DNA of 64,000 nucleotides from Macrostomum lignano (lineage: Eukaryota): positions 20,684 through 84,683 of the forward strand of contig NIVC01002096.1 of the NCBI GenBank assembly GCA_002269645.1, given 5' to 3'. The position numbers were made by a program, and so were the translations under genes. A model generated the notes under the pieces. That model was not told the DNA's origin and ran no database searches. It saw only the letters and a list, made by a program, of their open reading frames with translations. This document shows, piece by piece, positions 16,928 to 64,000 of the stretch. Position 1 is the stretch's first letter. Every line of letters starts with the position of its first letter.

Positions 16928-17860
16928 GATTGAGATTCTATGGGTGAGATTCTAATGGGTGAGATTCTAAGGGGTGAGATTCTAATGGGTGAGATTCTAA
17001 TGGGTGAGATTCTAAGGGGTGAGATTCTAAGGGGTGAGTCTCTGAGGGGTAAACTTCTAAGGGGTGAGATTCTAAGGGGTTGGATTCTAAGGGGTGAGAT
17101 TCTAAGGGGTGGGATTCTAAGGGGTGAGATTCTAAGGGGTGAGATTCTAAGGGGTGAGATTCTAAGGGGTGAGATTCTAAGGGGTGGGATTCTAAGGGGT
17201 GGGATTCTAAGGGGTGAGATTCTAAGGGGTGAGATTCTAAAGGGTGAGATTCTAAGGGTGAGATTCTAGGGGTGAGATTCTAGGGTGAGATTCTAAGGGG
17301 TGAGATTCTGAAGGTGAGTTCTAATGGATGAGATTCTAAAGGGTGAGATTCTAAGGGTGAGATTCTAGGGGTGAGATTCTAGGGTGAGATTCTAAGGGGT
17401 GAGATTCTAAAGGTGAGATTCTAAGGGGTGGGATTCTAAGGGGTGAGATTCTAAGGGGTGGGATTCTAAGGGGTGAGATTTTAAGAACGGAGATTTTAAG
17501 AACTGAGATTCTAAGGGGTGAGATTCTAAGGGATGGGGTTTTAAGAACTGAGATTCTAAGGGCTGGGATTCTAAGGGGTGAGATTCTAAGGGGTGAGATT
17601 CTAAGGGATGAGATTTTAAGGGGTGGGATTCTAAGGGGTGAGATTCTAAGGGATGAGATTTTAAGAACTGAGATTCTAAGGGGTGAGATTCTAAGGGGTG
17701 GGATTCTAAGGGGTGAGATTCTAAGGGGTGGGATTCTAAGGGATGAGATTTTAAGGGGTGGGATTCTAAGGGGTGAGATTCTAAGGGATGAGATTTTAAG
17801 AACTGAGATGCTAAGAAGTGATATTCTAATGGGTGAGACTCTAAGAGCTGAGATTCATAG
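16928..17860 (+). repeat. 15-bp G-rich minisatellite (GAGATTCTAAGGGGT)
   Basis: Direct reading; G4 run in most units. Confidence 0.95.
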
Positions 17861-18301: not shown

Positions 18302-19290
18302 TGTCAGTGTCTCTAGAAGCATGTCAGTGTCTCTAGAAGCATGTCAGCGTCTCTAGAAGCATGTCAGTGTCTCTAGAAGCATGTCAGTGTCTCTAGAAGC
18401 ATGTCAGTGTCTCTAGAAGCATGTCAGTGTCTCTAGAAGCATGTCAGCGTCTCTAGAAGCATGTCAGTGTCTCTAGAAGCATGTCAGTGTCTCTAGAAGC
18501 ATGTCAGCGTCTCTAGAAGCATGTCAGCGTCTCTAGAAGCATGTCAGTGTCTCTAGAAGCATGTCAGTGTCTCTAGAAGCATGTCAGTGTCTCTAGAAGC
18601 ATGTCAGCGTCTCTAGAAGCATGTCAGTGTCTCTAGAAGCATGTCAGTGTCTCTAGAAGCATGTCAGTGTCTCTAGAAGCATGTCAGTGTCTCTAGAGTG
18701 GTGTCAGTGTCTCTAGAAGGTAGTCAGTGTCTCTAGAAGGTAGTCAGTGTCTCTAGAAGGTATTCAGTGTCTCTAGAGGGGTGTCAGTGTCTCTAGAAGG
18801 TAGTCAGTGTCTCTAGAAGGTAGTCAGTGTCTCTAGAAGGTAGTCAGTGTCTCTAGAAGGTAGTCAGTGTCTCTAGAAGGTAGTCAGTGTCTCTAGAAGG
18901 TAGTCAGTGTCTCTAGAAGGTAGTCAGTGTCTCTAGAAGGTAGTCAGTGTCTCTAGAAGGTAGTCAGTGTCTCTAGAAGGTAGTCAGTGTCTCTAGAAGG
19001 TAGTCAGTGTCTCTAGAAGGTAGTCAGTGTCTCTAGAAGGTAGTCAGTGTCTCTAGAAGGTAGTCAGTGTCTCTAGAAGGTAGTCAGTGTCTCTAGAAGG
19101 TAGTCAGTGTCTCTAGAAGGTAGTCAGTGTCTCTAGAAGGTAGTCAGTGTCTCTAGAAGGTAGTCAGTGTCTCTAGAAGGTAGTCAGTGTCTCTAGAAGG
19201 TAGTCAGTGTCTCTAGAAGGTAGTCAGTGTCTCTAGAAGGTAGTCAGTGTCTCTAGAAGGTAGTCAGTGTCTCTAGAAGCATGTCTGTGT
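18302..19290 (+). repeat. 20-bp minisatellite (GTCAGTGTCTCTAGAAGCAT then GTCAGTGTCTCTAGAAGGTA)
   Basis: Two homogenised sub-domains switching at about 18700. Confidence 0.97.
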
Positions 19291-19350
19291 CTCTTCATGT
19301 ATGTCAATATTTCTGAGAAGTTTGGTCATATATAAAAGCTCCAATTGCAG

Positions 19351-23874
<4,524 letters not shown>

Positions 23875-31400: not shown

Positions 31401-32713
31401 CTGACTAGTTAATCTCAGAGCTCGTTGAGTCTCCGGATCTGACTGCATCAAGGCTAATTCTTCGCCTTCAAGCTGAGGCGGAGGATCTTCGCAGGACTGA
31501 ATATGAGCGCCGAGAACTTCGAGAGCAGCCTCTGCGCTAGCGGCGCCAGCCCGACTCAAGCAATTCCTAACCGACGGAATCAAGTGCTCAAATCGGCAAT
31601 CGTCTTTAAAACAGTCTAGCGCTTCCATCAGCACCAGGAGGACTTCTTTGGCGCTGCCAATTTTTGATACCCGATCTCTGAGCACAGTTGAGCATAGGAC
31701 AAATAATACAGGCTGATTCTCAAGATTCCCCTGAGTCAGATAGAGCGACAGGCATCGGGCAATGTCCCATGCTTCTATAGCCAAGGCTTCATCTGTGGCT
31801 GAGTCCAGACATCTGCGCAGCCTCTGTTCGTCATCTGCAGCTAGGCTCTGCTCAACTTCCGCTGTTAGCGGCAGCTGCGGTTTGGGCGCTTCGGGATCCA
31901 GCAATTCAGATTAGTTTTGATGTTATGGCGGATGGGACCTTTTTGAACGTCTGATTATGAGGATTCATAACTATACGAGCGTACAAAAGTTTATAACATA
32001 CCCTGCTAAGCCTGCATATCTGGACAGTCTCATCTGCCTATCTTCTCTACAATTCTACCGGACAATATCTACTCTACAGTTCTACCGGACAATATCTACT
32101 CTACAGTTCTACCGGACAATATATACTCTACAGTTCTACCGGACAATATCTACTCTACAGTTCTACCGGACAATATCTACTCTACAGTTCTACCGGACAA
32201 TATCTACTCTACAGTTCTACCGGACAATATCTACTCTACAGTTCTACCGGACAATATCTACTCTACAGTTCTACTGGACAATATATACTCTACAGTTCTA
32301 CCGGACAATATCTACTCTACAGTTCTACCGGACAATATATACTCTACAGTTCTACCGGACAATATCTACTCTACAGTTCTACCGGACAATATCTACTCTA
32401 CAGTTCTACTGGACAATATATACTCTACAGTTCTACCGGACAATATTTACTCTACAGTTCTACCGGACAATATCTACTCTACAGTTCTACCGGACAATAT
32501 ATACTCTACAGTTCTACTGGACAATATATACTCTACAGTTCTACCGGACAATATTTACTCTACAGTTCTACCGGACAATATCTACTCTACAGTTCTACCG
32601 GGCAATATATACTCTACAGTTCTACCGGACAATATTTACTCTACAGTTCTACCGGACAATATCTACTCTACAGTTCTACCGGGCAATATATACTCTACAG
32701 TTCTACCAGCCAT
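28464..32713 (-). CDS. GLMN: glomulin (GLMN / FKBP-associated protein, YAP-binding/ALF4/glomulin family), about 600 aa
   Basis: Exons (minus): 32713-32707 (ATG GCT G, hypothetical), 31861-31065, 29840-29187, 28808-28464; phases consistent. Family-like segments recognised from memory: AWDIARCL, KIGSAKEVLLVLMEAL, DHPSCRGFFISRLKDQI, DMLEEGEALLAGLNLLKFL..RD..N.T, SISVGGVPLPPM..KRQVM..AL..LEL. The first micro-exon is inferred. Confidence 0.85.
28831..29157 (+). repeat. degenerate 45-bp-period repeat with conserved core TCGATACATATCGG, in the last glomulin intron
   Basis: Cores at about 28831, 28876, 28920, 28965, 29010, 29056, 29101, 29143. Confidence 0.85.
29948..31035 (+). repeat. 30-bp minisatellite (CCTGATAGATGGGATATAATCCCACACACA) in a glomulin intron
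   Basis: Near-perfect on the left, degenerate on the right; explains the CVWDYIPSIR ORFs. Confidence 0.96.
32040..32708 (+). repeat. 27-bp minisatellite (CTACAGTTCTACCGGACAATATCTACT)
   Basis: About 24 copies; explains the TLQFYRTIS ORF. Confidence 0.97.
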
Positions 32714-33184: not shown

Positions 33185-34213
33185 TCACTGGAACACCTGG
33201 TCAGTAGGATCATCAATATAAGCCGGCAGATCCGAATGCAGCCGCTGTCTCATCTTGGCCTGCAGCTTGCTAACATACTTAGAACTGTTGTTAGCCCGCA
33301 GTCTAGGCGGCGGCACATAAGCCGGATTGTCGAACAGGCAAGGACCAGTGAAGCTACCGGACCAGATTCGAATTGGTCGAAGAACGCAACGAGGCCCGAT
33401 CTCGGCCATGTCGCCAGTTTCATTCACGATCTGATAATTTCTAAGCCAGATTCGACCGTCTAGCCAAGCTAATAGCATCACGTGATCAACGAATGGTTTG
33501 CTACGCGGATGAGACCGCGGCACGTTGAATACCTGGGTGAACAGTTCTTTAACTAGGCGAAGCTGAGCATTCGATTCGAAAGCCGAATCAAAAGCGACGA
33601 TGTGTCGGGAGCCTTTCAGACAGTTGCCAGTTAGCTTCAGTTCGCTCATAGTGTGAACATTTTCAACTAGAAACTTCACGCTTGGCCCAGTGCCAACCCG
33701 GCTAATCCACATGTACAGATCCTGCTTCCGCCTGGTTTCCACGTACATCACGTGACTAGCATTGCGCATCTCGGCAATTTCGTTCAACAAAATTAACTGA
33801 TCTTTGCCAGCAAACTTGGAATCGGATTTCGCCTGAGGCAGTAGGGCTTGAAAATCTTTCAACAGATGCCGGCCAAGATAGGAGACGCCGCGTGAAGCTA
33901 CTGTAAGTAGCCTCTGCCGGTTGGTCCATTCTGATTTTTTAACAGCGTCGCCACCGCTGCGCACTTTTGGAGGCAGCACGCCTGGCTGCTTGAGCGGATT
34001 CTCAATGTGTCGGGTGGCCTGAGACTGTTTAGCTTTTTTTCCCGGCTTCAAGTTCATTGTCTGTTTCTTCTTTGATTTTGCTTGCACCTTGTCTGGCATA
34101 ATCTGCTTTGGTGGCAACTTTTTCTCTACAGACACATTAGCACTTGCAGTTTTCTGCTTCTTGGCCACTGGTTGGCCATTGGCAGAAGCTCCGAGCTGTT
34201 GCTTTGATCGCTT
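33185..34213 (-). CDS. BRIX1: ribosome biogenesis protein BRX1 (Brix domain)
   Basis: Motifs WTNRQRLLTVASRG, RKQDLYMWIS..GPSVKFLVENVHTMSELKLTGNCLKGSR, HPRSKPFVDHV, RIWLRNYQI, EIGPRCVL, GSFTGPCLFDNP, DPTDQVF match BRX1. The ORF stays open up to a strong acceptor (CTTCTTTTTGCTTTCAG) ending at 34214; the initiator Met is not in this exon. Confidence 0.95.
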   Translation of the reverse strand, partial: KRSKQQLGASANGQPVAKKQKTASANVSVEKKLPPKQIMPDKVQAKSKKKQTMNLKPGKKAKQSQATRHIENPLKQPGVLPPKVRSGGDAVKKSEWTNRQRLLTVASRGVSYLGRHLLKDFQALLPQAKSDSKFAGKDQLILLNEIAEMRNASHVMYVETRRKQDLYMWISRVGTGPSVKFLVENVHTMSELKLTGNCLKGSRHIVAFDSAFESNAQLRLVKELFTQVFNVPRSHPRSKPFVDHVMLLAWLDGRIWLRNYQIVNETGDMAEIGPRCVLRPIRIWSGSFTGPCLFDNPAYVPPPRLRANNSSKYVSKLQAKMRQRLHSDLPAYIDDPTDQVFQ

Positions 34214-37139
34214 CTGAAAGCAAAAAGAAGCCAGTTTAAAGTATATTCCACGGTTAAATATGAGCTTTTAAATGCCATCAAATTACTAGAATTTGAGCAC
34301 CTTTTCAGGGACAGAAAGAATGCCCATTGTCAATACTTGATTTTGTTAATTGAAAGCAAACTAGGTAAGAACACTTATAGTTCATAACTGATAAGACTTG
34401 TGATGGTACTAAATTAAATAGCTTGTAAAAGTCTTATACATTTTTAAAGACAATACAGAATGTCTTAAACTAAACAAAACTACATATTGCACTTTGGGCA
34501 TATTTATTTTATATATGATATACCAAAACTAATAAGAACTATCATGTAGTGTCATTTTAACCAACTATTATTCAAGTTATTTTGAATATTACTAACATTT
34601 ATTAGAATGGCAAATCACTTTTGCCATTTCTATGAATAAGATCTTAATGAAAAGCTAAAAGTGCTTAATGACCACATATTTAAACTTTTGCTAATCAACT
34701 TTGTTTGCAATGCTCTTGCTTATCTTTATATTTGTGCCACTTTTAATCAATGCACCATATGGTTGCCTATATATACCCAACACCCATCCAACTTATCTAA
34801 ACTGGATGGGTGAAATAGCTGTTAGCCAAGGTAAGTTGCAAAATTGAAAATGCGAAAAATGAAAAATTGGGAAAGGAAAAAAAGGAGAGGAAGAGAAAAG
34901 GAAAAGAAAGGAGGGAGAAAAGAGAGAGGAAAAAAGGAGAGAAAGAAAAAGAGAAAAAAAGAAAAAGGCAAGAAAAGTCATATACAAAGTTAAAATTAAG
35001 TCACAATTAGGGGAACTAAGTTGCTATCAAGAGGAACTAAGTTGCAAATCTAGACAAAACTAAATTGCATTGGACGGGTAAAATTTTGAGGTTGGGCATA
35101 TATGTGGTTGCCCATTTTATAGGTTAGAAAGTAGGTATATTTTAAACCTTATTTGTATTTCATACTACCATTGCTCTTTCCCAAAGAGATACCTATTACT
35201 TTGAGTTCCTTGAGAATAATCAAAAAAGGTATAAGACTAAGACGGCTACATACCAAGATGGCCACAATATTGCATGTCTATTATATCCACTCTTCATTTA
35301 ATATTAATTAGAAATATAATATCTATTGTTATATTATTTTTATATAACATGTTTAATCAATCATATTTATAAATAGTAAAACAATAATGGATTTGAAAAT
35401 AATTACCTCTTATACAAAAACTTTAATCTTTTTTAGTGTTTATGCCAATTTAGGCTTATTCTTTATCATTATATACATCTGATCTATCGCTATTATTAGT
35501 TTATCAAGAAACCATTGCTAGTAGTAATGCTATATAAAAATGAGATTAATATGCTACAAGGTTTTTATTTTGTACTAGGCTATATACTTGTTTTATTTAG
35601 TAGTAGGCCTAGATAAATATCCATAGGTTAGGTTATAATAAAAGCTGAAGCCAAAAGGAATTATTATTATATAATATAGATATATTATAGTATCTATCTC
35701 CTTAGGCCTAAGACTTAACGATCTATACCTAATATAAATTATTATCAATAAGAAATAAGTGAAATATAAAGATCTAGGCTAGGATTAGGCTATCATTATT
35801 GATTTAGATGTTTAAAGCTATGGCCATCTTAGTGTGTGGCCATCTTGGTCATGTGCCATCAAAATAACATATAGCAAAACATAAAATATGCTGACAATGA
35901 CTAAACAATTGTCCCCCAATTGATTTCGGATTTCTAAAACAACTAAACATATATCAAAGCAGAAACTAGGCCCATAACATTGTTCATATGCTCTACTATG
36001 TGTTCAGCTGTTTTAGAATTTAAAAGCAACTATGAGAAAAATATAGAATGAGAAGTTTGACACAGATTGCTTTTTCCACTTTTTTTCTATATGTTAGGTC
36101 TATAGGCCCTAGTTCAAAAGTTACAAGTGCTTAAAGTTCAAAAACATGATGGGACCCAATTGTAGAACGACCCGAAGGCATAACTATAAGAATACATTAT
36201 TTTTTATTAAAAATATTATGCCTAGCTTGACTCATTGACTAGCCTAGGTTTAGGCTAAGGGCCTAGGGTGTAGGTCTCATAGGCCTATCAGGTCTTGGTC
36301 AGGGCAAAGGCTAGACTTAGAGTTCTAGTTCTGGCATTGGAACCCATTTTTAATGGCTTTGGATCTAGCAATGGTATTCCTGTAGTGCAGTTTATGGGTA
36401 TAATATAGCAGAAACATTTTAATTTTTTGACAGGTGGTTTATATTGAGATTTTGTTCAAAATAGGGCCTGAGATCAAAACAAAATGATGAGATTCAAAAG
36501 AAGATACTTCTAATGTTCAAAGATGTCATTAGTATTAGTAGATAACTGCCTGCAGAAGACTGCCCGATCCATAGCTATTAGAAAATGGGTTGCAGTGCTG
36601 GAACTCTAGCCATTGCTCTTGGTCAGTGGGTTAGGGCACCATTAGGCCACAAGCCACATATTGTATTGTAGTGTAGGTCTAAATAAAAAAAGTATATAAT
36701 TATAGCATTGTACACCACACCAGTTGCGTAATTTTTGCCCATGTGACCTATAGTCAAGTCAGTAACTTCAGTGTTTTTTACCTTCAAGTTTCAGTTTAGA
36801 TCAACATCCATAAATGAAAATGGGCGAGAGTGGAGTGAATGACCGGATTTTCGGTTCTCGGTTCAGTTCCGAAATTTAAATTAATTCACTCCGGATTGCC
36901 TCTAAATAGTTAGTGTATAAACAAAGTAAAAACATTTCTGCTCCAATTTCACTTAAACATCAAATAAAAAAGCATTGCCATTGCAATAAATATTTAAATT
37001 ATATTTTTTTATGATAGTTTTACATTTTATTGTACTTTTTTCGTCAGTCATTTTAGCGCGCATATGAAACTTATCCACACGAAATTCAAAAGCACATTGC
37101 TTTCGAAGTGCTTTGAATGAGAATACACTAAGGCAAAGG

Positions 37140-37320
37140 CAGTGGCGCAACCAGGTGGGGGCGGGGGGCAGTCGCCCCCCTCTTATAGGCGCGGAGACCC
37201 AAAAAATCAAAGGGGGACCAAGCGAATTTTCGCCAAAACAGAGCCACCCCGTCCGCCCCACCTCCCGGGACTTTACCCTCCAGAATCCGCCCCCTCATAA
37301 AATTTCTGGTTGCACTACTG
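37140..37320. mobile_element. possible small MITE (hAT-like CAGT ends) nested in the TIR element
   Basis: CAGTGGCGCAACCAG at 37140 and CTGGTTGCACTACTG ending 37320 (13/15 inverted match) around a GC-rich core in AT-rich DNA; no clean TSD. Confidence 0.5.
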
Positions 37321-37790
37321 AACGAAAGTTTCCTTACACACCCTCTCTTCAATATAAATTTATAATTATATTATATTTTAATATAAAATTATAATATTAA
37401 TTACACATTATAATTATAATTATAATTTTAATTTTACTTACATGTATATATAATTATATAATTTAAAAAGATATTTAATTTATCTGCACTTTCTTTGAAA
37501 ATTTAACCTCATAAAAATAAAATATAAGCATTAAAAGTCATGCTTAAATGTCTTTTGCTGAGCAAAACTGTCACTCTATAATGATGGTATTAAATATTTA
37601 CGCGTAGATGAACTTTGTTTTAGTTTTTAGTTACTCTTAAGACTATAAAAAAATTACCTGGGACTACATGAAGTATAACTTGTTTCAACTAATTGTTTTA
37701 CTTAAATGAATAAAAAATATATACACAGTAAAAGTTAATAGCTCATAACAGCAACAACTTAACAACAAATTATGCAGCTAGCAATCAAAG

Positions 37791-38745
37791 TCACAGAGCA
37801 GGGTGCTTCAGATGGCGCGCCGCAGAGCCTGAGAGCGGAGGAAGTCCGCCCCGTTGGCAGTGTCGGGCGCCCTGGCGTCGCGTACGTAGGAGGCAGTCCA
37901 CGTATCGACGGGTTTGGGCCTGACCCCGCCTGAGCGGGCCCTGCAGAGTGAGCAACAGGGCTAGGACGTCCTGAACAGGTTGGGGGCAGTAGCCCTCGGC
38001 CCGGATCACGTACGTGGCCCGCCAGTTGAAGTCGCCGCCGGCGCAGGATGGTGGACGGGCGCTGCAGCTTGGCCCGATCGTACAGGGCCTCAGTCCCGAC
38101 GCTCTCATCAGCTCGAAAGGTCGCACGGAGCAGCCCTGAATGCGCCGAGTCCAGCTGCCGCTCTAAGCGTAGCCGTCAGTGTCCACGTCTCGGCGTTGTA
38201 GAGCACACCGCCTGCCACAGCCGACGAGCCCTCTGGCGGTCGGGCAGCGCTTCGGACTGGACGTCGGCTCGGATCGAACGGAAGGCCGCCCAGGCAAGTC
38301 CTCGGCGCCGCCGGATCGAGGTCCGTCCACGTGAGGCACCAGACCGCCGAGTAGGTGATCCCGCTGGTAGCGTGCGCGCGAGCGTGGTCATCTGCCCGTC
38401 TGCGAGGCGACATGTCAGGTCCGCTAGCGCTGGGATGTCGGCCGGCACAGTCAGCACCTAGGTCTTTAGCGTGTTGACAACCAGTCCGACGCTCAATGCC
38501 ACCTTGACCAACCTGTCGATCTGGCGGGATGCCACCTTGAACGGACGAGGACAGGAGGGCGAGTTCGTCGGCGTAGCCAAGCAAATAATAATAAGGCGCT
38601 TTTCACCGTGGCGGCGACCGATGCGTCTGCGCAGCGCAGGAAGCCGTCGTTAGCCGAGGAGACTGCGGTCCGAAGCACCCAGTGGCAGCAGCACGAAGAG
38701 AAACGGCGCCAAAGTGTCGCCATGCAGAACTCCTGATGAAGTGTC
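37791..38745 (-). mobile_element. 5'-truncated, frameshifted non-LTR retrotransposon (LINE) RT and C-terminal region, RTE-like
   Basis: Across shifting frames: SGVLHGDTLAPFLFV, LGYADELALLSSSV (degenerate YADD), RRGLAWAAF, VLYNAETWTLT, RRRLQLAGHVIR. Multiple indels and a stop; clade assignment is tentative. Confidence 0.88.
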
Positions 38746-39339
38746 GAACTGATGATGATTTACATGTATGTAATCGCCCTACTAGTGAACCGTCTTCTCA
38801 TGGGGGAAGGATCAGATCGTATGACTATGGATGGCTGCCAGCCGTCTATGACCAGACTATGACCGACAGATCGCCCTTCAGGTTGTCCCGCCCATGCATA
38901 TTGATAACTTTTTGGTAGTGCTATATTAGAGACGCGGTAAGGACCCAAATGTGCCCCATCGATAGCTAAGGTGCAAATATTGATCATTGGGTTATTGCAT
39001 GACCCACTGGCTGCCACCACTCTGTGACCTGGCGAACCTGGATCTACGGTATGACCAGACCTGGCGAGGCCGGAGCCCCCGCCTGGGATGGGTATCAAAG
39101 GGTTGGAGCTAGCGGTGAGCAGCATGCAGCCGAATAGCTGATAGGAATCTGCTTGGGCACAAATCGAGAACTCCGGGATCATACAGACGGATTTTTATCA
39201 GGGGATCTTTTAAGGCTGTGATGACATACAGTTCAGATTGCAAAAAGTACATGTAGTGTATAGAGAACACGTAGAACAGCTATACGTGTACATCTAGTTT
39301 GGATTGATCAATGGGTTCGGGCCTGGCTCCTCATATGAA

Positions 39340-39600
39340 AGGTTTTTTTCTCCACGGAGCACCAGACCGCTGATGTGATGAACCACTGCTGGCAGCGTGC
39401 GTCTGCGTCGTGGCATGTCAGGTCCGCTGATACGTCAGCAGACACAGTCAGCATCTCGGTCTTCAATATGCTGTCAACGCTTGAACCCACCTCTTTCTGT
39501 GCTTTCAACAGACGAGAAAAAGAGGCTGAGGTCGCCAGCGTTGCCAAACAAGCTCAGGTGTTTTTTGCCGCTGTGGCGAACGATGCGTCTCCACAACAGA
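39340..39600 (-). mobile_element. second, more degenerate fragment of the same LINE family
   Basis: GNAGDLSLFFSSVES resembles GYADELALLSSSVQ, and LKTEMLTVSADVSADLTC resembles KT*VLTVPADIPALADLTC; GCGGACCTGACATG is shared at DNA level. Confidence 0.7.
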
Positions 39601-39623
39601 TAAAAAAGCAGGAAGAAATCTCT

Positions 39624-41148
39624 CCATTTCAGCATTCGAGGTGTGCCACGAAGCTCACAGATGTTCAATTGAAAAGATATTTTTGGTGTAAAGTCTACTC
39701 AGATGTTATATTGCAAAAATGCTTTTAGTTTAATTTTAAAAAGATTTTCCTTGCTGTAGTATGCATTTGATTTTTTTGTACAGTCACCATCTCGGTCGTA
39801 GATTCTAAAGAAAATTCACTCCATTTCAGCATTCGAGGTGTGCCACGAAGCTCACAGATGTTCAATTGAAAAGATATTTTTGGTGTAAAGTCTACTCAGA
39901 TGTTATATTGCAAAAATGCCTTTAGTTTAATTTTAAAAAGATTTTCCTTGCTGTAGTATGCATTTGATTTTTTTGTACAGTCACCATCTACGTCGTAAAT
40001 TCTAAAGAAAATTCACTCCGTTTCAGCATTCGAGGTGTGCCACGAAGCTCACAGATGTTCAATTGAAAAGATATTTTTGGTGTAAAGTCTACTCAGATGT
40101 TATATTGCAAAAAAGCTATTAGTTTAATTTTAAAAAGATTTTCCTTACTGTAGTATGCATTTGATTTTTTTGTACAGTCACCATCTACGTCGTAAATTCT
40201 AAAGAAAATTCACTCCATTTCAGCATTCGAGGTGTGCCACGAAGCTCACAGATGTTCAATTGAAAAGATATTTTTTGTGTAAGGTCTACTCAGATGTTAT
40301 ATTGCAAAAATGCTTTTAGTTTAATTTTAAAAAGATTTTCCTTGCTGTAGTATGCATTTGATTTTTTTGTACAGTCACCATCTACGTCGTAAATTCTAAA
40401 GAAAATTCACTCCATTTCAGCATTCGAGGTGTGCCACGAAGCTCACAGATGTTCAATTGAAAAGATATTTTTGGTGTAAAGTCTACTCAGATGTTATATT
40501 GCAAAAATGCTATTAGTTTAATTTTAAAAAGATTTTCCTTGCTGTAGTATGCATTTGATTTTTTTGTACAGTCACCATCTACGTCGTAAATTCTAAAGAA
40601 AATTCACTCCATTTCAGCATTCGAGGTGTGCCACGAAGCTCACAGATGTTCAATTGAAAAGATATTTTTGGTGTAAAGTCTACTCAGATGTTATATTGCA
40701 AAAATGCCTTTAGTTTAATTTTAAAAAGATTTTCCTTGCTGTAGTATGCATTTGATTTTTTTGTACAGTCACCATCTACGTCGTAAATTCTAAAGAAAAT
40801 TCACTCCATTTCAGCATTCGAGGTGTGCCACGAAGCTCACAGATGTTCAATTGAAAAGATATTTTTGTGTAAGGTCTACTCAGATGTTATATTGCAAAAA
40901 TGCTTTTAGTTTAATTTTAAAAAGATTTTCCTTGCTGTAGTATGCATTTGATTTTTTTGTACAGTCACCATCTACGTCGTAAATTCTAAAGAAAATTCAC
41001 TCCATTTCAGCATTCGAGGTGTGCCACGAAGCTCACAGATGTTCAATTGAAAAGATATTTTTTGTGTAAGGTCTACTCAGATGTTATATTGCAAAAATGC
41101 TATTAGTTTAATTTTAAAAAGATTTTCCTTACTGTAGTATGCATTTGC
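39624..41148 (+). repeat. 197-bp tandem satellite, about 7.7 copies
   Basis: Unit starts at 39624, 39821, 40018, 40215, 40412, 40609, 40806, 41002; copies nearly identical. Confidence 0.97.
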
Positions 41149-41608
41149 TTTTTTGTTTATTTATTTTCGTGGAACTGAACGTGGAACTGAAAATCCGGTC
41201 ATGTGGAGTGATCTATCCAGAGTGTCGCGTTGGAGTTGGCGCGCGAGGATTTGAGTTAGAAAACAGTAATTTTTAAAAAAGAATTTGGATCCAAATTAAA
41301 GCAGATAAAAAACATTTCCTTTAATTTTTTTGAAAATTCTTTAACTTTCATTGCTTTTTAGCATTTGCTTTTTTATACAATTTTGTTATTTTTAAAGAAT
41401 TAAAACTAGTTTTTAAAACTAGTCAACGAAAAAATATTGTATTGCATGACGACGAGTGTATAGTATAGTGTTGTTCGGTAGCCGCTAGAGAGCTAGTTGA
41501 GTTTAGAGCCTTAGAAAGAAATCGTTGTAAATTTGCAGGCTAAAATTACAGTGAATTTTTTTCTGATCAAGTCCTTAAAAATTAAAGTAGTTAATAATTT
41601 GTATTGTC

Positions 41609-44600
41609 ATGGCTGATGTTCTTTCAATAATTCGAGACTACACTATAAAAAATAAAGAAATAGTAGAAAAGGATGATGAAGTTATCTTTGGAGACTTTGC
41701 CTATCCTAAGAGTACAAAGACTAATTACATTATATGGGGGTAAGTAAATTTAGTATGTTTGTATTTAAATTCAGTATATTAGATGGTAGTATGTAATCTT
41801 TATTCCCATTTAAGTTGAGTATAACCATAAGGACTCCAGCCCAGTGAGATTTTGATAGTTATTTTATTAGTACTTTTTAACTGTATTTGATAAAATTTAT
41901 TTGCCTGCTTTTGAAATTTGTCAAGTAAAAAAAGTTATAAATCTTTTTACAATAATTGTATTTGTATGTTACCATTTTCATTGATAATGTTTTCAATGAT
42001 TTTGAAAAGTAGACCTATTTATATTTTGGCAATTTTGCCTAGTAGTATTATTACTATTAAGTAGGTTACTATTACTACTATTTTGGCTTAATAAGTAGTA
42101 TTGTATAAACAAGCAATTGTTATTTATTATTATGTCTATGATAACTATTTAAACAATATATATATGCAATCCTGATTTATACTGACTATTTCTATATGAC
42201 TTACTTTTTGAGTTTGACCAAAAATGTCATTTATATATGAAAAAACCCTAAAACAAAATTAATACAATTTTGGATAAATAGCAAAAATTATTAAGGCTTA
42301 TTATAATACCTATGGCGAAATCCAAAAACATGGGATAAAATGGTAAAACAAATCTGCGGACATTTGATGGAAAGTAATGTATCTAAAAAAGGTTTTTGAA
42401 AGATAGATAGGTCTTTAGAAAATAGTTCTGGATAAAAACTATTGTTTTCATGCTTTATATTGTTGAATAAATAAGAAAAAACCACAAAAAATCATTTTGA
42501 AAGTCCAAGTTGACCGATTTGCAATTTTTTGTTTCACTTTTTTTCATTATTAAACAATTAATTTTAAGACTTGTAGGCCTTAGAGCCCTATTGCAGCCAA
42601 TGGCCATTTTCGTGGACGGCGTCCGGCGCGGATTGGCCTGGCGGCAGCGCGGCGCATGGTGGCGGCGCGCGGTGGTGTGGCGTGTGGCGGCGGTGTGGCA
42701 GGTGCTTCGGCGACTGGTGGCAACAAAGGGCCGGGTCAACGTCGATTGATGCGAGCCATTGACTGATTAATTGAACCAAATCACTGATCCTGGGGACTGG
42801 CCCTGGCGCGGTACGGGTAGATGTCTGGCGCGGGAAAGGGGGGCGTCTGGCGCGGTTCAGACCTTGGCTGCAATAGGGCCTTAGAGAAGGCTAATTTTTT
42901 ACTACTTACAAAACAGAAAGTAATCTGTGTTTTACTTTTTATTCAATTCAAAAAGATGAAGTATTTCTACGGATTTCAAAGTTTTTCTAAAACCATATAA
43001 ACTTGCAAAAATTCATACTAATATAAAGTGCAAAGTTTGCCAGCAAACATCTTTCTCTAAAAGTAAATATATCACTAATTCCTTGTTGCAAAATAATATT
43101 TAAGTTGTTTTCTTTCATTTGAATATTAACTTGCATAGTATTAGTATTTGTAATATGCCTATATTTAGACTTAAAAATTTTGGGTAAAAAATGGTACCAC
43201 AAAATGTGAACCCGGCATCCAAATCAGATGCTTACTGTATGCTCATTAAGTGACAAAGAACAATGAAATTACACTAAAACATGTATCATTGCGGTGTATA
43301 TGCAGGAAAAAAAGAATTTTCCAAATCGCTTTAGTAGAAGCTGAGTAAAATGCAATTTTCCAATCCTTATAGGAATTCCAATGTGTTACCCGGCTTCCAA
43401 ATCGGATGCTTACTGTATGCTCATTAAGCGACGAAGAACAATGAAATTACACTAAAACATGTATCATCGCGGCGTGTATGCAGGAAAAAAAGAATTTTCC
43501 AAATCACTTTAGTAGAAGCTAAGTAAAATGCAATTTTCCGATCCTTTCGGGAATTCCAATGTGTTACCCAGCTTCCAAATCAGATGTTTACTGTATGCTC
43601 ATTAAGCGACGAAGAACAATGAAATTACACTAAAACATGTATCATTGCAGCGTGTATGCAGGAAAAAAAGAATTTTCCAAATCGCTTTAGTAGAAGCTGA
43701 GTAAAATGCAATTTTCCGATCCTTACGGGAATTTGTATGTTTAAATAATAAACTTACGTTGAACACAATTTATTGCAAACGAACTCTACAAAATACACGT
43801 TGTCAAGAGTAACGAAAGTGATAAACAAATAAACCCTTGAAAATAATGTTAAATATGTTGTAGAATTATAGAGTGTAACATTATAAAATAGTTAAAGTTA
43901 TTAAAATACATTATTATAGCTTTTCTATCATTTTTATTAGACTCATTTTAGGTCGTAATTAAACTTACTATTTTAACAAATCATTTTATTAAAAATAAAG
44001 CTATACAAAAATAATTTGTGCTTTAATAGACTTTTTTACCTTTTAAAAACTTGAATAAATTTATTTTATAGCTTTATTGCTTTCAAATTGCCAAATAACG
44101 AATTTTCATAAAACTTGCCCCCAATTTTTGGATTTCACCCTATATATTTACATTCCTAAGAACCTAAAAGCCAATTTATGTCTAATTACACTTAAACAAT
44201 TTTTACCAAAATGTTTTTGCAACTTTTAGTTCAATGCCTTAAATGTCCTAACATTTAGTAACTTTACTTGATATATAACTTTCTTGTAAGGATGTTATTG
44301 CAAAATTAATGTTAGATTGATTGACATAATTTGTTTTTAAATATAGGCAAAACATTTTAGTAATTTTAAGTATCTAAAGCTTTATTTTAAAATTGGGACA
44401 CACATTAATATATGTAACTAATATTTAGGACTTAGAGACAAAAGAAACAACAAAGTGCAGCAACAAAAATATCGAATGCATTATTTAAGCTTTTTTTAAT
44501 TTTAGTCCAGATGCACTTCAAGCACAATTTTGCTTAATATAAATATCAACTAGGAGTGCTCGCAATGTCAATTAAAAACAAGGGATATATTATGTATTGT

Positions 44601-47600
44601 TGTTGCCAAGATAGGCATAGAAATAGAAAAAGGCAAATAACTTATTTTTTGTTTATCATATCTTTAATTGAACTATAAAAATGAAAACTTTTAGATAAAA
44701 AAATCTCTTAGATGCATGTAAAGATAGCTAAAATATAGTCTGCATTGAAAATCTTTGTTAAACAGAACACTCATTTATTTGAATCATTTGTCTGAATATC
44801 TATTGGAAATCACTATATCAAAAATGAATTCAAAAGACATAAAATGTAGCATTTTGTTTTTTAATATGCTTTCATATTTTAAAAGTTTTATTTCTTTTAT
44901 GTTTTTAATTTGTTTAGGTTTCTTGATTTTTTCATATTCAAAAGTACATTCAAAATACTTGGAAATATTTCTAAAAAAAGTAAGACATTTTTTGGATTTA
45001 GATTGGATTTGGATTTGGATTTAGAAACATGTTTGAACCAATTTTCAAATAGCTTAGAACACCACTTTTTGTATGCCAAATATAATTCTTTTAGATTCAA
45101 GTATGCACCCCAATGAGGACCAGAAAATTCTAGCATAGATGACACTTTCCTGACTATTTTATATTAATAGCAAGATGGTTATTTTTATGGTTAATATATA
45201 AAACAAATAATATCTTAATTAAATAACAAACTTATAGTGCAAATAATAGGAGGTTGTTAAGTAAAAAATGAAGAAATACATTCTTGATATTATGGTAATT
45301 TAGTGGTTCTCATTATCAACTTTAACAAGCTTACATAAGTTAATGCTATCTAAATATACTAAATCTCTAAGGTTTATATGTTTGAATGAATCAATATACT
45401 AAAAATGTTTTATCTGTCTATTAAATGTGATCAATTAATGCAATTGTTAACTATTAATATAAATAAGTTTTATAGTGTCCAGATAGTGTCTTATGACTTG
45501 ACAGTAAAAATAAACATAATAAAAGTAATAGCTTTTCACTGCCAGACTTTTGACAGAGAGTCAAATTTTGGCAGTCTAAAGTCAGTAACCCAGTATGTCT
45601 ATAAGCAATAATCCTTACCTTTTTTATTTACATTGATTCCTATATCCCATTTGCTATTTCTATCTATTTTCTAGGGTCTTAGTCTATATACCTATGTATC
45701 TAAGATCTATATATCCCATTTCTTTTATATTTATCTAGAATCCTATTGGTTTAGATTTTGTGCCTTATCCCACTATTCTAAGTCAGGATTTCAACTTCAA
45801 ACTAGTTTATCATTTAATATATAATTTAGTATACATTGTGTTAGTATATATCAATAAAGCCATAGTAGAGCTGATATTAATATATTCTGGTTTAAGTATA
45901 GACATTTCAGGTTTTATAATTTAAGTAATCAAGTTTCATGTCTCTGCCTTTCTAAGCTTTCAATTATATTGCTACCAATGAGAAAAATCAAAACTAGATT
46001 TTCATTTTCATTTTTAAAAGGTTCTGTTAAAAATAATCTTTTAATATTAATTAAAAAATCAGTTTTAAGCTGTCTCTATTTGGTCTATTGGCATTGTGTC
46101 TGTTTATTTTGAGAATAAAATTGTTTATTTCACTTAGGGTTTACATCTCTCTTTTGCAATTTTTAAAGCAACTATCTAAAATTTATATAAAAATAATTGA
46201 TAATAAAAAAACTTGACAAAGGCATGAGCATTTGCTTGAGTTAGTCAGTGAGTAAGTCACTTATTCCAGACGGTCAAACAAAAGTAATTAGCCCATTGCC
46301 TTGGCAATAAATAATTGGCTAAATTGTAATAGAAGCACATGTCAGACTTTGCATATTTTTTGGTGAGAGAGAGGTAGGTAGAGAGAGAGAGAAGAGAAGA
46401 GAGGTCATTGCATTTTATAAATTTAGTATATATACCACCAGTTTCAAGCCTTTGGGCTCTTTGTCAGGCCAAAAATTAGTGTGTAATGCAATGCAAGTTA
46501 GTCTCTCAAGTATTCTTTTTCTCAGTATGATAAAATGGATGAGCAGCTGTACATATGTGGGATGTACATTTAAAACACTGTTCAGTCTGGCTCTACCTTG
46601 TCCCAGAGGTTTTCAACCAGTCAGTTTAAGTGAATTTTATTTGTTAGAGAGGAGAGAGAGAGAGAGAGAAAAGGAGCTATTACATTTGTCTTATGTATAC
46701 ACCAATTCATAAACATAGGTCATGGTTTTGGCAACTTTTTTATATACAATAAAAAAAGTCGAATTTATATTAATTGAACAAAATGCTGCACCATCTCCAC
46801 ACCCAACTGACCAGTACCAACCGGCCAGACAGCAGCAAGGACTACTACACTCTAGAGTGCATTCTCTACCTGCTCCGCAATGTCCGGCACAACCATGCCC
46901 AGTATGTGCGCACAGCCGCAGCCGCCGGTGTGCCAGTTGTTCGTCTGCCCGACCGCCGAGACCTGCTCAACTATCTCACTGGCAAGTCGGCCACTTCGGA
47001 CAAGATTGATCGATCAGCTCCGCTGGACATGTCGGCGCAGAGGCCCGTGGCTGCAGCGGCAGCAGCTGGTGCGTCTAGTATGGAACCGTCTGTTCCCTCT
47101 GCTGCCGCCGCCGTCTCCACTGATGCCTCTGCCGCTCTGTCAACAGTGGATCTTGACGCCGTCAGATCTGCAGACACTGCCGATGTCTCGTCGTCGGCCG
47201 TCTCCGCCGATCACAGCGACTCGCATTCGTTGGCTAAACGGGCCAGAATCGATTTAGATTCGAGTGGTGCCAATGATGCTACTAATAGTAATAGCGGAAT
47301 TGTTGCGCAATCGTCTACTACGGCTGCAACTGATGCTTCCGGACTGCAGGCTGGCTCAGCTGCCCCGGCTCAGACGGCGGTTAGCGAAGCTGATCAGCTG
47401 GCAGCTGTGCAGCGGTCGATGAAGGAGCGAGAGAGATTAGCGGCTAAACTGGTTGACGAGACTGGCGCTGCTAGGCCTGCAGTGCTGCCGGAGAGATTCG
47501 AAGGATCAACGCTTAGTCAGGTATAAATATGTTATTGTTGCCCTCATTATCTAATTATCTTTTTTGCCGTCATTTTCTAATCATCAGTAATTTCCCTCAT

Positions 47601-50600
47601 TATCTAATCATTATTAATCGCCCTTCATATCTAATTATCATGAATTGCCCTCATTATCTAATCTTTTTGCCGGCATTATCTAATTATCATCAATAGCCCT
47701 CATTATCTAATCATCTTTAATTGCCCTCTTCTAATGATCATTAATTACCCTTATTATCTAATCGTCATTAATTTCCGTCATTATCTAATCATTATTAATC
47801 GCCCTTCATATCTAATTATCATGAATTGCCCTCATTATCTAATCATCTTTTTTGCCTTCATTATGTAATGATCATTAATTGCTCTGATTATATAATTATC
47901 ATTAAATGCCCTGATAATCTAATCATCTTTATTGCCGTCATAATCTAATTATTATCAATTGCCCTAATTATCTAATCATGATTAATCGCCCTCACTGTCC
48001 CAACTCGCGAATCTCCAGGTGATGACAATCGAGAAAATCCACGCTCTCCGAGCGAAGCGCCGAGTGAAAATTCGTGACAGCATCAAACCGGACGAGAGCG
48101 GCGGCGCCCTAGCTGGCGCCGATTCTGGCGCCATCGGGGCCAGCTTTTTCAGCGAAGATCTCAGCCTGTTACGCGATCTCGTGTCGCGCGAGCGACTGCA
48201 TCGCGATAGGAATTCCTGTCTGCAGGCGGCAACGAGAAACTTTGCCGACTCTGTGCTCAATGGCGTGCTGCGGGCCGTGCGAGCGCGCGAGGAGGGCGCC
48301 AATGCCATTGCTAACTCGTCCGCTGTGACTGCTTCTGGAGGTGTAAGTCTGTCTGAGCGGCGTTGAGGTCATAGCTTGACTTGATTTGATAGATTAGGTT
48401 TACGGGCCAGCCTCCCAGATCCTCAGTTGCCTGGCCAGCCTCCCAGAGTGTCAGTTTCTGGGCCAGTCTCCCAGATCCTCAGTTGCTGGGCCAGCCTCCC
48501 AGATCCTCAGTTGCTGGGCCAGCCTCCCAGATCCTCAGTTGCTGGGCCAGCCTCCCAGATCCTCGGTTGCCTGGCCAGCCTCCCAGATCCTCAGTTGCCT
48601 GGCCAGCCTCCCAGATCCTCAGTTGCCTGGCCAGCCTCCCAGCTCCTCAGTTGCTGGGCCAGCCTCCCAGCTCCTCAGTTGCTGGACCAGCCTCCCAGAT
48701 CCTCAGTTGCTGGGCCAGCCTCCCAGATCCTCGGTTGCCTGGCCAGCCTCCCAGCTCCTCAGTTGCTGGGCCAGCCTCCCAAATCCTCAGTTGCTGGGCC
48801 AGCCTCCCAAATCCTCAGTTGCTGGGCCAGCCTCCCAAATCCTCAGTTGCTGGGCCAGCCTCCCAAATCCCTAGTTTCGAGTGCAGTATCTCTCCGATCA
48901 GACCCTTAAACTAACGAATTTCTCCTGCTCCAAACCTGCCGCGTCATCACCAGCATTCGCGCCAGTCGGTGGGTTCGAATCCCGCGCACCAGCAGCGGCC
49001 AACGCAGCACCTGGCCTACAGTCGGTACGATCAGGAGAAATTCGCTAATCGAGACGAGGCAGCGGATTTTTTTAAAATCGACACTGTCGGAGGCTGGGGC
49101 ATCGACATGTTGGGCAGGGGACCGGCAGGTCCAGGCGGCGATTCCAGCGCCGTCAAAGGCGGACCCGGCGGCGCCGCGAGGCCCTCAGATCCCAGGCGGA
49201 TGCAGCAGCAAAGGCAAAGCTTTGGTGAGGGATATTTATACTTACCAATATTCTTTTATCCGCAACTATCTTATCTGGCTGAGAGCTCCTCCATTGGTTG
49301 GGTCGAACTCTGCTGGGAATCTCACTGTGAGATCACCTTCTCTGCTGGGAATCTCACTGTGAGATCATATTCTCTGCTGGGAATCTCACTGTGAGATCAT
49401 CTTCTCTGTTAAGAATCTCACTGTGAGATGATATTCTCTGCTGGGAATCTCACTGTGAGATCATCTCTGCTTGAAATCTCACTGTGAGAACATCTTCTCT
49501 GCTGGGAATCTCACTGTGAGATCACCTTCTCTGCTGGGAATCTCACTGTGAGAACATCTTTTCTGCTGGGAATCTCACTGTAAGATCACATTCTCTGTTG
49601 GGAATCTCACTGTGAGAACATCTTCTCTGCTGAGAATCTCACTGTGAGACCGGCTTCTCTGCTGGGAATCTCACTGTGAGATCATCTTCTCTGCTGGGAA
49701 TCTCACTGTGAGATCATCTTCTCTTTTGGGAATCTCACTCTAAGACTCTTCTCTGTTAGGAATCTTACTGTGAGAACATCTCTGCCGGGAATCTCACTGT
49801 GAGATCACTTTCTCTGCTGGGAATCTCACTTTTAATCCAACTTCGTAGTCGAGAGTTTCGTCATGAGACTTTATGTGATAAGGTAGAATATCATATTTTA
49901 GAAGCAACCCCACGTGCGTCACAAGCATCATAATTATTCTATTCAGTGTCTAGGGCTGTAGGGGTTGTAGCGTAGCGGTTAGACCGTCGCATTCCCAACT
50001 AAAAGGTCGGGGGTTTGATTCCTGATACTACTGGAACAATTTGTGTCTTTGAGCAAGACACTTCAATTCTACATTGCTTCAGTTCACCCAGCTGTAAAAT
50101 GGGTGCCAGCATTAGCTGGGGTAATTGAGGGTGTGGGTGACGACCCCCCCCCCCCCCAGTCCTTGGACTGAACAGCCGTACGCAGCCTTCAGATGCGCCG
50201 CGCAATAGCTGCGGCTGAGCTGTCGGCTGCACATCTGGCCTAATTGGGGCAGGTGTAATCAGTTAATTAATCAGATTCAGTGTCTGCAATGTACTACTCA
50301 CAATAGGACTCGAATATATGCACCGAGCTTTACCTGTTCCTGTTCACCCCGCAGGCTCCGGCACCCCCCGGACGCCAGTGCCAGCTTCGCCGCTAGTTGG
50401 CAACTCGTCGACGAATTCAACACCGTCCAGTCAGCAGAAGCGCACAAGCCGAACTCCTATTATAATCATACCGGCCACCGCTAGCCTCATCTCTATGCTC
50501 AACGCTAAAGACATCCTGCTAGAGAAACGATTTGTTTCTATCGAAGATAAACGCGCGGCGGGCGCTCGCCGAGAAAACGAAGCACTGATTCAACGAATGC

Positions 50601-50944
50601 GCCCGGACGGCACTACAACGGTGCCGTTTCGCGTTGTTGACCAGCCGCAGAAGCTCACAGCGGACGAGTGGTCGCGGGTTGTAGCCGTGTTCGTCCAGGG
50701 CCCGGCCTGGCAGTTCAAGAACTGGCCAATCGGCGGGGGCATTCCCGTGGACATTTTTGCCAGAGTGAAAGCTTTCCATTTGAAGTTTGCCGACATGCCA
50801 ACTGATGCGAATGTGCTGCAGTGGAATGTCACAGTGCTGCAGTTGGATCGGCACAAGCGGCATCTGGACAGAGCGGTGCTGCAGCAGTTCTGGGATGAAT
50901 TGGATCTGTTTATGCGGAAGCACAAGACTCATTTGAGGTTTTAA
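41609..50944 (+). CDS. CDC73: parafibromin / Paf1 complex subunit CDC73, 5 exons, 673 aa
   Basis: Exons 41609-41739, 46815-47520, 48019-48342, 48954-49224, 50355-50944; total 2022 nt, phases 2,0,0,1. N-terminus [43 protein letters not shown], and the C-terminal domain [12 protein letters not shown]...[17 protein letters not shown]...FWDELD match CDC73. Confidence 0.97.
42585..42879. mobile_element. 295-bp MITE with perfect 16-bp TIRs in CDC73 intron 1
   Basis: GCCCTATTGCAGCCAA (42585-42600) and TTGGCTGCAATAGGGC (42864-42879); CTTAGA flanks both ends (42579-42584, 42880-42885); GC-rich body in AT-rich intron. Confidence 0.88.
43203..43733 (+). repeat. about 178-bp tandem repeat, 3 copies
   Basis: Unit starts near 43203, 43380 and 43558. 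Confidence 0.92.
47540..47990 (+). repeat. degenerate minisatellite of about 27 bp (CATTATCTAATCATCATTAATTGCCCT) filling CDC73 intron 2
   Basis: Recurrent ATTATCTAAT motif throughout the intron. Confidence 0.85.
48405..48872 (+). repeat. 28-bp minisatellite (GCCAGCCTCCCAGATCCTCAGTTGCTGG) in CDC73 intron 3
   Basis: Direct reading; explains three overlapping repetitive ORFs. Confidence 0.95.
49308..49830 (+). repeat. minisatellite of about 31 bp with palindromic core ATCTCACTGTGAGAT in CDC73 intron 4
   Basis: Direct reading; 7-bp inverted arms around a single T. Confidence 0.92.
49961..50340 (+). mobile_element. tRNA-derived SINE with CORE domain
   Basis: A-box-like TAGCGTAGCGG (49968), B-box-like GGTTTGATTCC (50012), then TTGAGCAAGACACTT...GCTTCAGTTCACCCAGCTGTAAAATGGG (about 50049-50103), which resembles the MIR CORE consensus as recalled. 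The 3' boundary is approximate. Confidence 0.8.
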
Positions 50945-51469
50945 TCTGTATTGACAAAACTATATATCTGTATTGATAGTTACTGTTCAAGCCTTAGTTA
51001 ATCCTTTTATGACAGAGGGGGGTGTCTCACCGTGTTTGCCAGCTGCATTCAACTATTGATTAAATAATCCAACTAATCATTTTCGCTATTTTATATTAAC
51101 TACTGATATCCATGCTCTCTTATTAGTAGTCTATATGCAGGTTATATGAAAAGGTTTCGTTTTAAATACTCGTAAAATAATACAGACAGACTGTCTTGTC
51201 ATGTTTTGTAAATAAATTCATTCGCTAATATTATATATTATGTTATTAATGCAGAAAAATTAAATAAACCACAACACATACTACTGTTGCTAACTACCCG
51301 CCAGTTTAATTCTATGCGACCATAATACAAGCTTTGTGCGAGTGTTTTGTTCTGCAATTTGTGTAAATCTATATGCTTTGTTTATTGACTTGATATTCAT
51401 TTTTAGTTCAGTAAGTTGATTTCAAATTTAAAACCAATTTTAATTTTAACCATCTTACTACACGTGTAT

Positions 51470-51810
51470 CTCCGCAATTCCCCCGTGTGCCTTGGCACCT
51501 CCGCAATTCCCCCGTGTGCCTTGGCACCTCAGCAATTCCCCCATGTGCCTTGACACCTCCGCAATTCCCCCGTGTGCCTTGGCACCTCAGCAATTCCCCC
51601 ATGTGCCTTGACATCTCAGCAATTCCCCCGTGTGCCTTGGCACCTTAGCAATTCCCCCGTGTGCCTTGGAATCTCAGCCATCCCCTCGTGAGCCTTGGAA
51701 TCTCAGCAATCCCCCCGTGAGCCTTGGAATCTCAGCAATCCCCCCGTGAGCCTTGGAATCTCAGCAATCCCCCCGTGAGCCTTGGAATCTCAGCAATTCC
51801 CCCGTGAGCC
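51470..51810 (+). repeat. 29-bp minisatellite (CTCAGCAATTCCCCCGTGTGCCTTGGCAC) between CDC73 and the dynein gene
   Basis: Direct reading; about 11 copies in two variants. Confidence 0.92.
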
Positions 51811-52008
51811 GAAAAGAAAGCAACTTACAACTCGACTTGTGTTTGTCTCCGCAGCTTCTAAACAAACTGCCTACAAGTCAGCGAATGACATTGCATGCAT
51901 GCTGCCACCAGCTCAAAAAGACTTTACAGAAACAGCTATTCGACGAAAGATAATATGATCGCATTAAGAAGAGGCGCAGGCAGAGAGAGATCGTCTTGTT
52001 TAATCTAC

Positions 52009-52022
52009 GTTGCTATAGTGAC
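52009..52022 (+). promoter_or_regulatory. RFX X-box upstream of the dynein heavy chain gene
   Basis: GTTGCTATAGTGAC fits the RYYNYYWWRRNRAC X-box consensus exactly, about 360 bp before the ATG of a motile-cilia gene; forkhead-type TAAACAAA at 51859-51866. Confidence 0.6.
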
Positions 52023-52380
52023 AACAGGTAAAGACGGCAGATCTTACTGACTGAAGTTAAGTAGCTTGAAAAGCAGCATATTGAAACGTTTCTAATGTAT
52101 GTAACGCGTGTTCAATGCGCATAGGCTGGTGTTATCTACTCGTATAGAAGCTTAATAGGACCGGGGGTTTGGTGTTAGCGATAATGCATCACCTAAGCAA
52201 CGGGGCTTCTATGCTGCCAATACCCGTAGTTAAGGCAACTCCTAGCCCTACTAAAATGCCAGCAACTTTGAGTTCTTGCATGGTGTTAAAGCTCGAAAAA
52301 AAGCTTTTTCTGGAGTTTAATTTTTTGAAAGTTAAATCAAGTTACAAAAGAAGAGTTCTTTAATATTTATTTTCAAGCCC

Positions 52381-64000
<11,620 letters not shown>

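Follow-up and report, generated by a model that had tools for sequence, protein, structure and literature searches.

Mutator-like elements (MULEs) generate target site duplications (TSDs) of 8-11 bp, and among those described from Schmidtea, MuDR1_SM combines a 9-bp duplication with 46-bp terminal repeats and MuDR3_SM possesses 42-bp repeats (PMC6446971). Phantom and Curupira are both present in Platyhelminthes, Phantom with duplications of 8-10 bp and repeats of 18-613 bp, and minisatellites near one end are on record for the MULE clades Rehavkus and Phantom (PMC6446971). [quoted passage not shown] The element considered here lies in a 64,000-bp stretch of the flatworm Macrostomum lignano, termed the window, which belongs to contig NIVC01002096.1 of GCA_002269645.1 (Mlig_3_7, the M. 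lignano DV1 assembly; 100% identity, also called L001). A 4364-bp insertion at positions 36839-41202 of the window separates the genes BRX1 and CDC73 and is very probably a non-autonomous class II (cut-and-paste) transposon. Its boundaries are formed by four features.

36830-36838, no strand: left copy of the 9-bp TSD, GTGGAGTGA, abutting the left repeat; L002 and L003 each have one copy at their empty sites (see below)
36839-36870, plus strand: left terminal inverted repeat (TIR), ATGACCGGATTTTCGGTTCTCGGTTCAGTTCC, with short GTTC/AGTTCC direct repeats inside and weaker similarity running to ~36884
41171-41202, minus strand: right TIR, reverse complement ATGACCGGATTTTCAGTTCCACGTTCAGTTCC, with a 12-bp direct repeat, TTCAGTTCCACG, inside
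41203-41211, no strand: right copy of the 9-bp TSD, GTGGAGTGA, abutting the right repeat

The two 32-nt TIRs are complementary at 28 of 32 positions (88%) and constitute the top-ranked inverted pair in the region, and the similarity between the ends continues more weakly to about 46 nt. When up to three mismatches were permitted, the first 19 nt of the repeat were located at two places only in the window, where 0.02 are expected by chance. The duplication measures exactly 9 bp because the neighboring bases differ. Searches for a transposase revealed no Pfam domain in the six frames of 36839-39640 nor in the open reading frames (ORFs) of the element. Thus, the description of the locus in an earlier sequence-only reading as a TIR-bounded insertion of 4364 bp with an exact 9-bp TSD and no transposase holds in each respect. 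A hairpin at the left end that takes in part of the duplication (z -2.66) was judged to be incidental, as the duplicated bases are host sequence.

M. lignano is a neopolyploid, and the three paralogous copies in its genome show differences of ~2.2% in single nucleotide polymorphisms and of 36% when insertions and deletions (indels) are counted (PMC10733133). The paralogs of the locus were located via the BRX1 ORF: an identical protein is encoded on two contigs of GCA_002269645.1 and a cluster look-up provided the third contig. The two paralogous contigs, which derive from the same assembly as the window, are NIVC01003351.1 (L002) and NIVC01004255.1 (L003), and DNA comparisons for further copies of the element took in the window, L002 and L003, ~106 kb in all. 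Both paralogs possess a precise empty site with one GTGGAGTGA, at 6710-6718 in L002 and 6351-6359 in L003. There the sequences on either side of the element join directly, with an overlap of exactly nine bases, and the alignment in each case reads ...GGGCGAGA GTGGAGTGA TCTATCC..., with the 9-mer once. The insertion therefore is private to one of the three copies. Moreover, the 32-bp motifs are absent from both empty paralogs and therefore are not conserved promoter elements. The two circumstances under which the sequence-only reading would have been withdrawn, namely the lack of both other TIR copies and any empty-site allele, or a role of the TIRs as conserved promoter elements, consequently are countered by the paralogs. 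Substitution divergence of the flanks over ~1.5 kb was 0.46% between the window and L002, 0.74% between the window and L003, and 1.07% between L002 and L003. This low divergence of ~0.5-0.7% indicates that the insertion is young, and we infer that the jump postdates the divergence of the three subgenome copies.

The interior of the element is a patchwork in which seven segments were distinguished from left to right.

36871-37139, no strand: left subterminal region, AT-rich, without coding signal; nothing similar in the rest of the window, in L002 or in L003
37140-37322, no strand: GC-rich island whose ends show an inverted match of 13/15 and lack a duplication
37323-37810, minus strand: AT-rich stretch that may include the 3′ untranslated region of fragment A; it contains a (TTATAA)n-like microsatellite, at 37360-37458
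37811-38748, minus strand: fragment A of a long interspersed element (LINE), the 3′ half of a reverse transcriptase (RT) ORF, extending from the YADD motif as far as the C-terminus; dead
38759-39319, no strand: segment of ~560 bp without recognized homolog, with a 140-aa minus-strand ORF
39320-39602, minus strand: LINE fragment B, an internal piece, limited to aa 151-260, of a related RT (tblastn E 5e-14)
39606-41154, no strand: tandem array of a 197-bp unit, 7.8 copies at 39622-41154 with 97% matches, the last unit truncated

The stitched translation of LINE fragment A (37790-38750, minus strand) matched RT proteins at E 1.7e-78, with M. lignano RTs in UniRef among them. In tblastn comparisons positions 38748-37811 aligned with aa 115-419 of the RT P0121, which itself matches RVT_1 at 3e-28. 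A frameshift-aware alignment yielded 78% identity and, over 938 nt, disclosed one stop and 10 frameshifts. Fragment B, cut short at either end, cannot be a primary LINE insertion; its decay is greater than that of fragment A. The RT matches and tblastn alignments substantiate both of the LINE fragments that had been noticed earlier. As a 4.4-kb dynein ORF and the 1-kb BRX1 ORF in the same window are both intact, the frameshifts are real mutations and not assembly errors. M. lignano RT gene models (P0142-P0157) were considered as copies of the element, but are only 27-87% identical and hence are merely related LINEs. Proteins P0121-P0141 on short ENA/JGI metagenome contigs are those most closely related to the LINE RT of M. 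lignano (up to 78% identity in frameshift-aware alignment), which suggests that the samples behind these contigs hold DNA of a flatworm or similar animal.

The eight monomers of the 197-bp array are 97-99% alike and the array stops 16 bp before the right TIR, in agreement with the satellite placed about 20 bp from that end in the sequence-only reading. Matches of the monomer to the ends, to other parts of the element and to the remaining window do not exceed chance: a dimer of the monomer compared with the rest of the element produced matches of 9-11 nt only (E 0.2-3). Motif AATTCACTCC is shared by each satellite unit and the left subterminal region and is similar to the duplication in reverse complement; it was considered as a link between these parts, but 10-nt matches of this kind are at chance level (E 0.8). 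The GC-rich island at 37140-37322 had been called MITE-like. This proposal was not sustained, as the island has only the 13/15 inverted match, of which approximately one is expected by chance per 4.4 kb by our own estimate, lacks a duplication and shows folding that does not surpass that of shuffled sequence (z -0.35). No other copy of the island was found in the ~106 kb of M. lignano DNA. The segment at 38759-39319 contains no Pfam domain and phmmer searches of its ORF against 1.84 billion representative proteins recovered no real homolog, the sole match, a leucine-rich-repeat protein, being spurious.

These observations can be combined in a model in which a transposase encoded elsewhere would recognize the 32-bp ends together with the short subterminal GTTC/AGTTCC repeats, excise the whole 4364-bp unit and insert it where the target is cut with a 9-bp stagger, so that repair would yield the GTGGAGTGA duplication. 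The landing site would have been the ~3-kb spacer between BRX1 and CDC73, after the subgenome copies had diverged. The interior would represent debris gathered in earlier genomic homes, comprising a 5′-truncated dead LINE, an internal LINE scrap and 560 bp without homolog; the 197-bp array would have grown beside the right end, and the entire interior would now travel with the ends. The LINE debris is older than the insertion because it is ~10-fold more decayed than the ~0.5% divergence of the paralogs allows. Thus, the 10 frameshifts in 938 nt of LINE set against ~0.5% flank divergence lend inferential support to the description of the interior as cargo: the debris most likely came in as part of the element and, judged from its decay, would be cargo in a loose sense. 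Nested insertion in earlier homes, together with internal amplification, more probably accounts for the interior than capture does, and the 197-bp satellite may be an element-borne array.

The ends of the element and its interior patchwork are unrelated, only ~32-46 bp are related at each end, and no second copy emerged in the DNA compared. Such a constitution also might result from composite or 'macro' transposition, in which two distant ends of a short element mobilized the ordinary repeat-rich DNA between them as a one-off unit that does not belong to a family with stable cargo. The presence of the satellite within 16 bp of the right end suits an element-borne array instead, and we consider the composite route unlikely, although the current data do not tell it apart from the transposition of an element with resident cargo. 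Assembly of the interior at the present locus is more improbable still. According to this explanation a small TIR element arrived, perhaps with the satellite, and the LINE fragments and other debris inserted into it later. Fragment A does resemble an ordinary 5′-truncated LINE, perhaps with its own 10-bp duplication (TTACATGTAT at 37438-37447 and 38759-38768), and the region is a hotspot of new insertions in the paralogs. However, the flanks are only ~0.5% diverged whereas fragment A has accumulated 10 frameshifts and one stop in 938 nt, fragment B with truncations at both ends is not a primary LINE insertion, and the putative LINE duplication is weak (~p 0.07 by our own estimate).

Two further explanations concern the empty sites themselves. 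If the filled state were ancestral, the element would have disappeared from both other paralogs, either precisely excised or removed through an exact deletion between the 9-bp repeats. An empty site can be restored by recombination between duplications or by excision, and indels are very frequent among M. lignano paralogs (PMC10733133). Nevertheless, two independent base-perfect losses would be required, footprints are usual after cut-and-paste excision, and the window is not the outlier among the three copies, so that this polarity is very improbable. A chimeric long-read join that placed foreign DNA in the contig deserves even less credence, for although Mlig_3_7 was assembled from long reads of a repeat-rich, neopolyploid genome and is fragmented (PMC10733133) and L003 has a possible rearrangement or misassembly close by, a chimera would not yield inverted repeats placed precisely against a perfect duplication of nine bases of the empty site.

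Transposition of a cargo-bearing, most likely MULE-like element is preferred, and the following points weigh against that interpretation. The two TIRs mismatch at 4 of 32 positions. The LINE debris conceivably was copied after arrival from sources that were already dead. Neither the repeat (19-mer with up to three mismatches; 14-mer with up to two) nor any interior part recurred in the window, L002 and L003. The 9-bp duplication is compatible with both MULE and Merlin and does not separate the two. The terminal ATGACC... fits no superfamily consensus known to us. No autonomous partner emerged: when the DDE domain of Schmidtea MuDR1_SM, taken from a supplementary alignment (PMC6446971), was employed as the query in a word-limited search, MULE proteins of rotifers and metagenomes were recovered and none of M. 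lignano.

Searches beyond the M. lignano contigs were conducted with the repeat pattern and the ORFs. The pattern returned 34 matches in metagenomes, all of which are attributable to chance as the 27 nt past the pattern agree at only 4-11 positions, and 0 matches in viral contigs. The ORFs of the element are not present in a collection of 15 billion proteins.

To our knowledge, 9-bp duplications are given only by MULEs (8-11 bp, usually 9) and by Merlin (8-9 bp). The sequence-only reading had named these two superfamilies, which by established knowledge is the right reading of the 9-bp duplication; membership of the MULEs is proposed from the length of the duplication and of the repeats. On those grounds a Mutator-like affiliation appears the best assignment, with a slightly better than even chance of being correct. 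Merlin is a possible but distinctly weaker second candidate, and what these two estimates leave over falls to other affiliations, described or not. Merlin (IS1016-like) elements reportedly have inverted repeats and duplications of 8-9 bp, mostly 8 bp, and are said to occur in flatworms (Schistosoma). The present element resembles them in its inverted repeats, its flatworm host and a duplication within the 8-9 bp range, but differs in that most Merlin duplications are 8 bp. The hAT superfamily gives duplications of 8 bp. For the P superfamily 7-8 bp is described (PMC5199201). Both were ruled out here by a duplication of exactly 9 bp with differing adjacent bases. Similarly, the element as a whole was rejected as a MITE owing to its length of 4364 bp. 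MITEs are short (under ~800 bp) and of high copy number.

Among described elements, the animal MULEs of the Phantom clade and the Schmidtea elements MuDR1_SM and MuDR3_SM share with the M. lignano element a 9-bp duplication, repeats of comparable length (32-46 bp here vs. 42-46 bp) and the same phylum. Phantom and Rehavkus in addition are alike in possessing tandem repeats near one end (PMC6446971). In contrast to animal MULEs, the element here has neither a transposase nor a recognized sequence link to any MULE, and its terminal sequence is unlike any known to us. Plant Pack-MULE and Pack-TYPE elements provide a second parallel as transposase-less TIR elements with a foreign interior that is mobilized together with the ends. 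Captured fragments of host genes or exons are what defines Pack elements. The interior here instead comprises LINE debris, a satellite and further DNA without homolog, with no host-gene fragment detected, and therefore the element does not qualify as a Pack-MULE, strictly speaking. The earlier designation as a pack-type element accordingly is not upheld in that narrow meaning: the only protein homology inside is to LINE RT, and there is no similarity to the neighboring host genes. The third parallel is with Tetris and with the tandem-repeat MITEs and Helentrons of bivalves, which likewise have a satellite-like array between transposon ends so that transposition can seed the repeat elsewhere. 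The repeats of Tetris derive from its long inverted repeats, whereas the 197-bp monomer shows no relation to the ends. A Tetris-like, TIR-derived origin of the satellite thus was rejected on the basis of the 9-11-nt matches at E 0.2-3 noted above.

The element is flanked by two genes.

33185-34213, minus strand: BRX1 (Brix domain), whose known exon begins at a splice acceptor
41609-41743, plus strand: exon 1 of CDC73, with the ATG at 41609 and the gene running on to ~50944

BRX1 and CDC73 are transcribed divergently and in the empty state are separated by a spacer of ~3.0 kb. The BRX1 gene model is 5′-partial and the GenBank entry PAA48037.1 carries the label 'partial'. The insertion is ~2.6 kb away from the known BRX1 exon and lies upstream of CDC73, with 398 bp from the end of the right duplication to the CDC73 ATG, close to the figure of ~400 bp given previously. 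CDC73 of the filled copy still is called with both domains. BRX1 is intact in both uninterrupted copies, L002 and L003, and CDC73 is intact at least in L002. As BRX1 is intact in two other copies and CDC73 in at least one, any regulatory cost of the insertion would be buffered. An origin from RNA was considered and rejected, as Rfam and tRNA scans across 34-47 kb of the window detected nothing. No CDC73 was called in L003, where intron 1 is rearranged: in a comparison of L003 1-5559 with window 41989-44139, L003 5274-5559 matches window 43854-44139 in inverted orientation, and upstream of this segment there is no homology to the window. The rearrangement represents either loss of that CDC73 copy or misassembly.

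The same spacer contains at least three other paralog-specific insertions, two in L003 and one in L002. These paralog-specific TIR insertions point to recent DNA-transposon activity at the locus and imply that such events are routine in this genome. One is a TIR element of ~0.7 kb in L003 (7073-~7790; window site ~36100) with an 8-bp duplication, CTTTTGAA, the ends GGTGCGCAGTCATTTCGTCTGCC... and ...GGCAGACGAAACAACCGTCAACC (~17/23) and repeated TTTCGTCTGCC motifs; it is followed by the second L003 insertion, of ~0.3 kb (window site ~36092). The ~660-bp element of L002 (8636-9302; window site 34905-34912) has a perfect 14-bp inverted repeat, TATTGGAATAAGTT / AACTTATTCCAATA, and a possible TA duplication, and sits in a polypurine tract upstream of BRX1.

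Tandem repeats are abundant elsewhere in the window. Approximately 35 different minisatellite arrays with units of 14-51 bp and lengths of 0.3-1.6 kb each are distributed over 1-33000 and 47500-55000, roughly one per kilobase, and many reside in introns of a Ybp2/glomulin-like gene, of CDC73 and of the dynein heavy chain gene. Copy numbers vary between paralogs, as in the 27-bp array at 32039-32707, which has 24.8 copies in the window and clearly more in L002 (~50 by a rough estimate). The 20-bp unit AGGGGCGCCCACCAAGAGAC is found both at 1-72 and at 53538-54146, ~53 kb apart, and related units recur within the pairs 16931-17856 / 19692-20930 and 18303-19294 / 21337-21952. Intron 1 of CDC73 harbors a 178-bp tandem repeat (43203-43733; three copies, ~4 in L002) which is unrelated to the 197-bp repeat. 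At 54212-64000 the window contains the axonemal-type dynein heavy chain gene with an uninterrupted exon of 1463 aa at 56250-60641.

The insertion is real but a fairly ordinary event in a transposon-rich genome. Previous work ascribed most of the divergence among M. lignano paralogs to indels (PMC10733133). The locus provides a clean, dated movement of a DNA transposon after the whole-genome duplication of M. lignano, with one subgenome copy filled and two empty. That satellites are spread by transposons is an idea already well documented in flies and bivalves, and if other copies of the element bear the same array it would furnish a concrete case of a cut-and-paste element that spreads a satellite. 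A larger proposal, which we regard as possible but doubtful, is that the element belongs to a currently mobile, transposase-less, MULE-like family with 9-bp duplications, all copies of which would carry the 197-bp array and seed the satellite at gene-proximal sites after the genome duplication. If true, an active endogenous transposase is implied in a flatworm model for which transposon tools are wanted. Because the element sits 398 bp upstream of CDC73, between two genes arranged head to head, disruption of a promoter could be studied here in a natural setting in which the other copies are able to compensate. From the ends of the element a candidate active family can be delimited, and they suggest that a transposase may still be working in this regeneration model.

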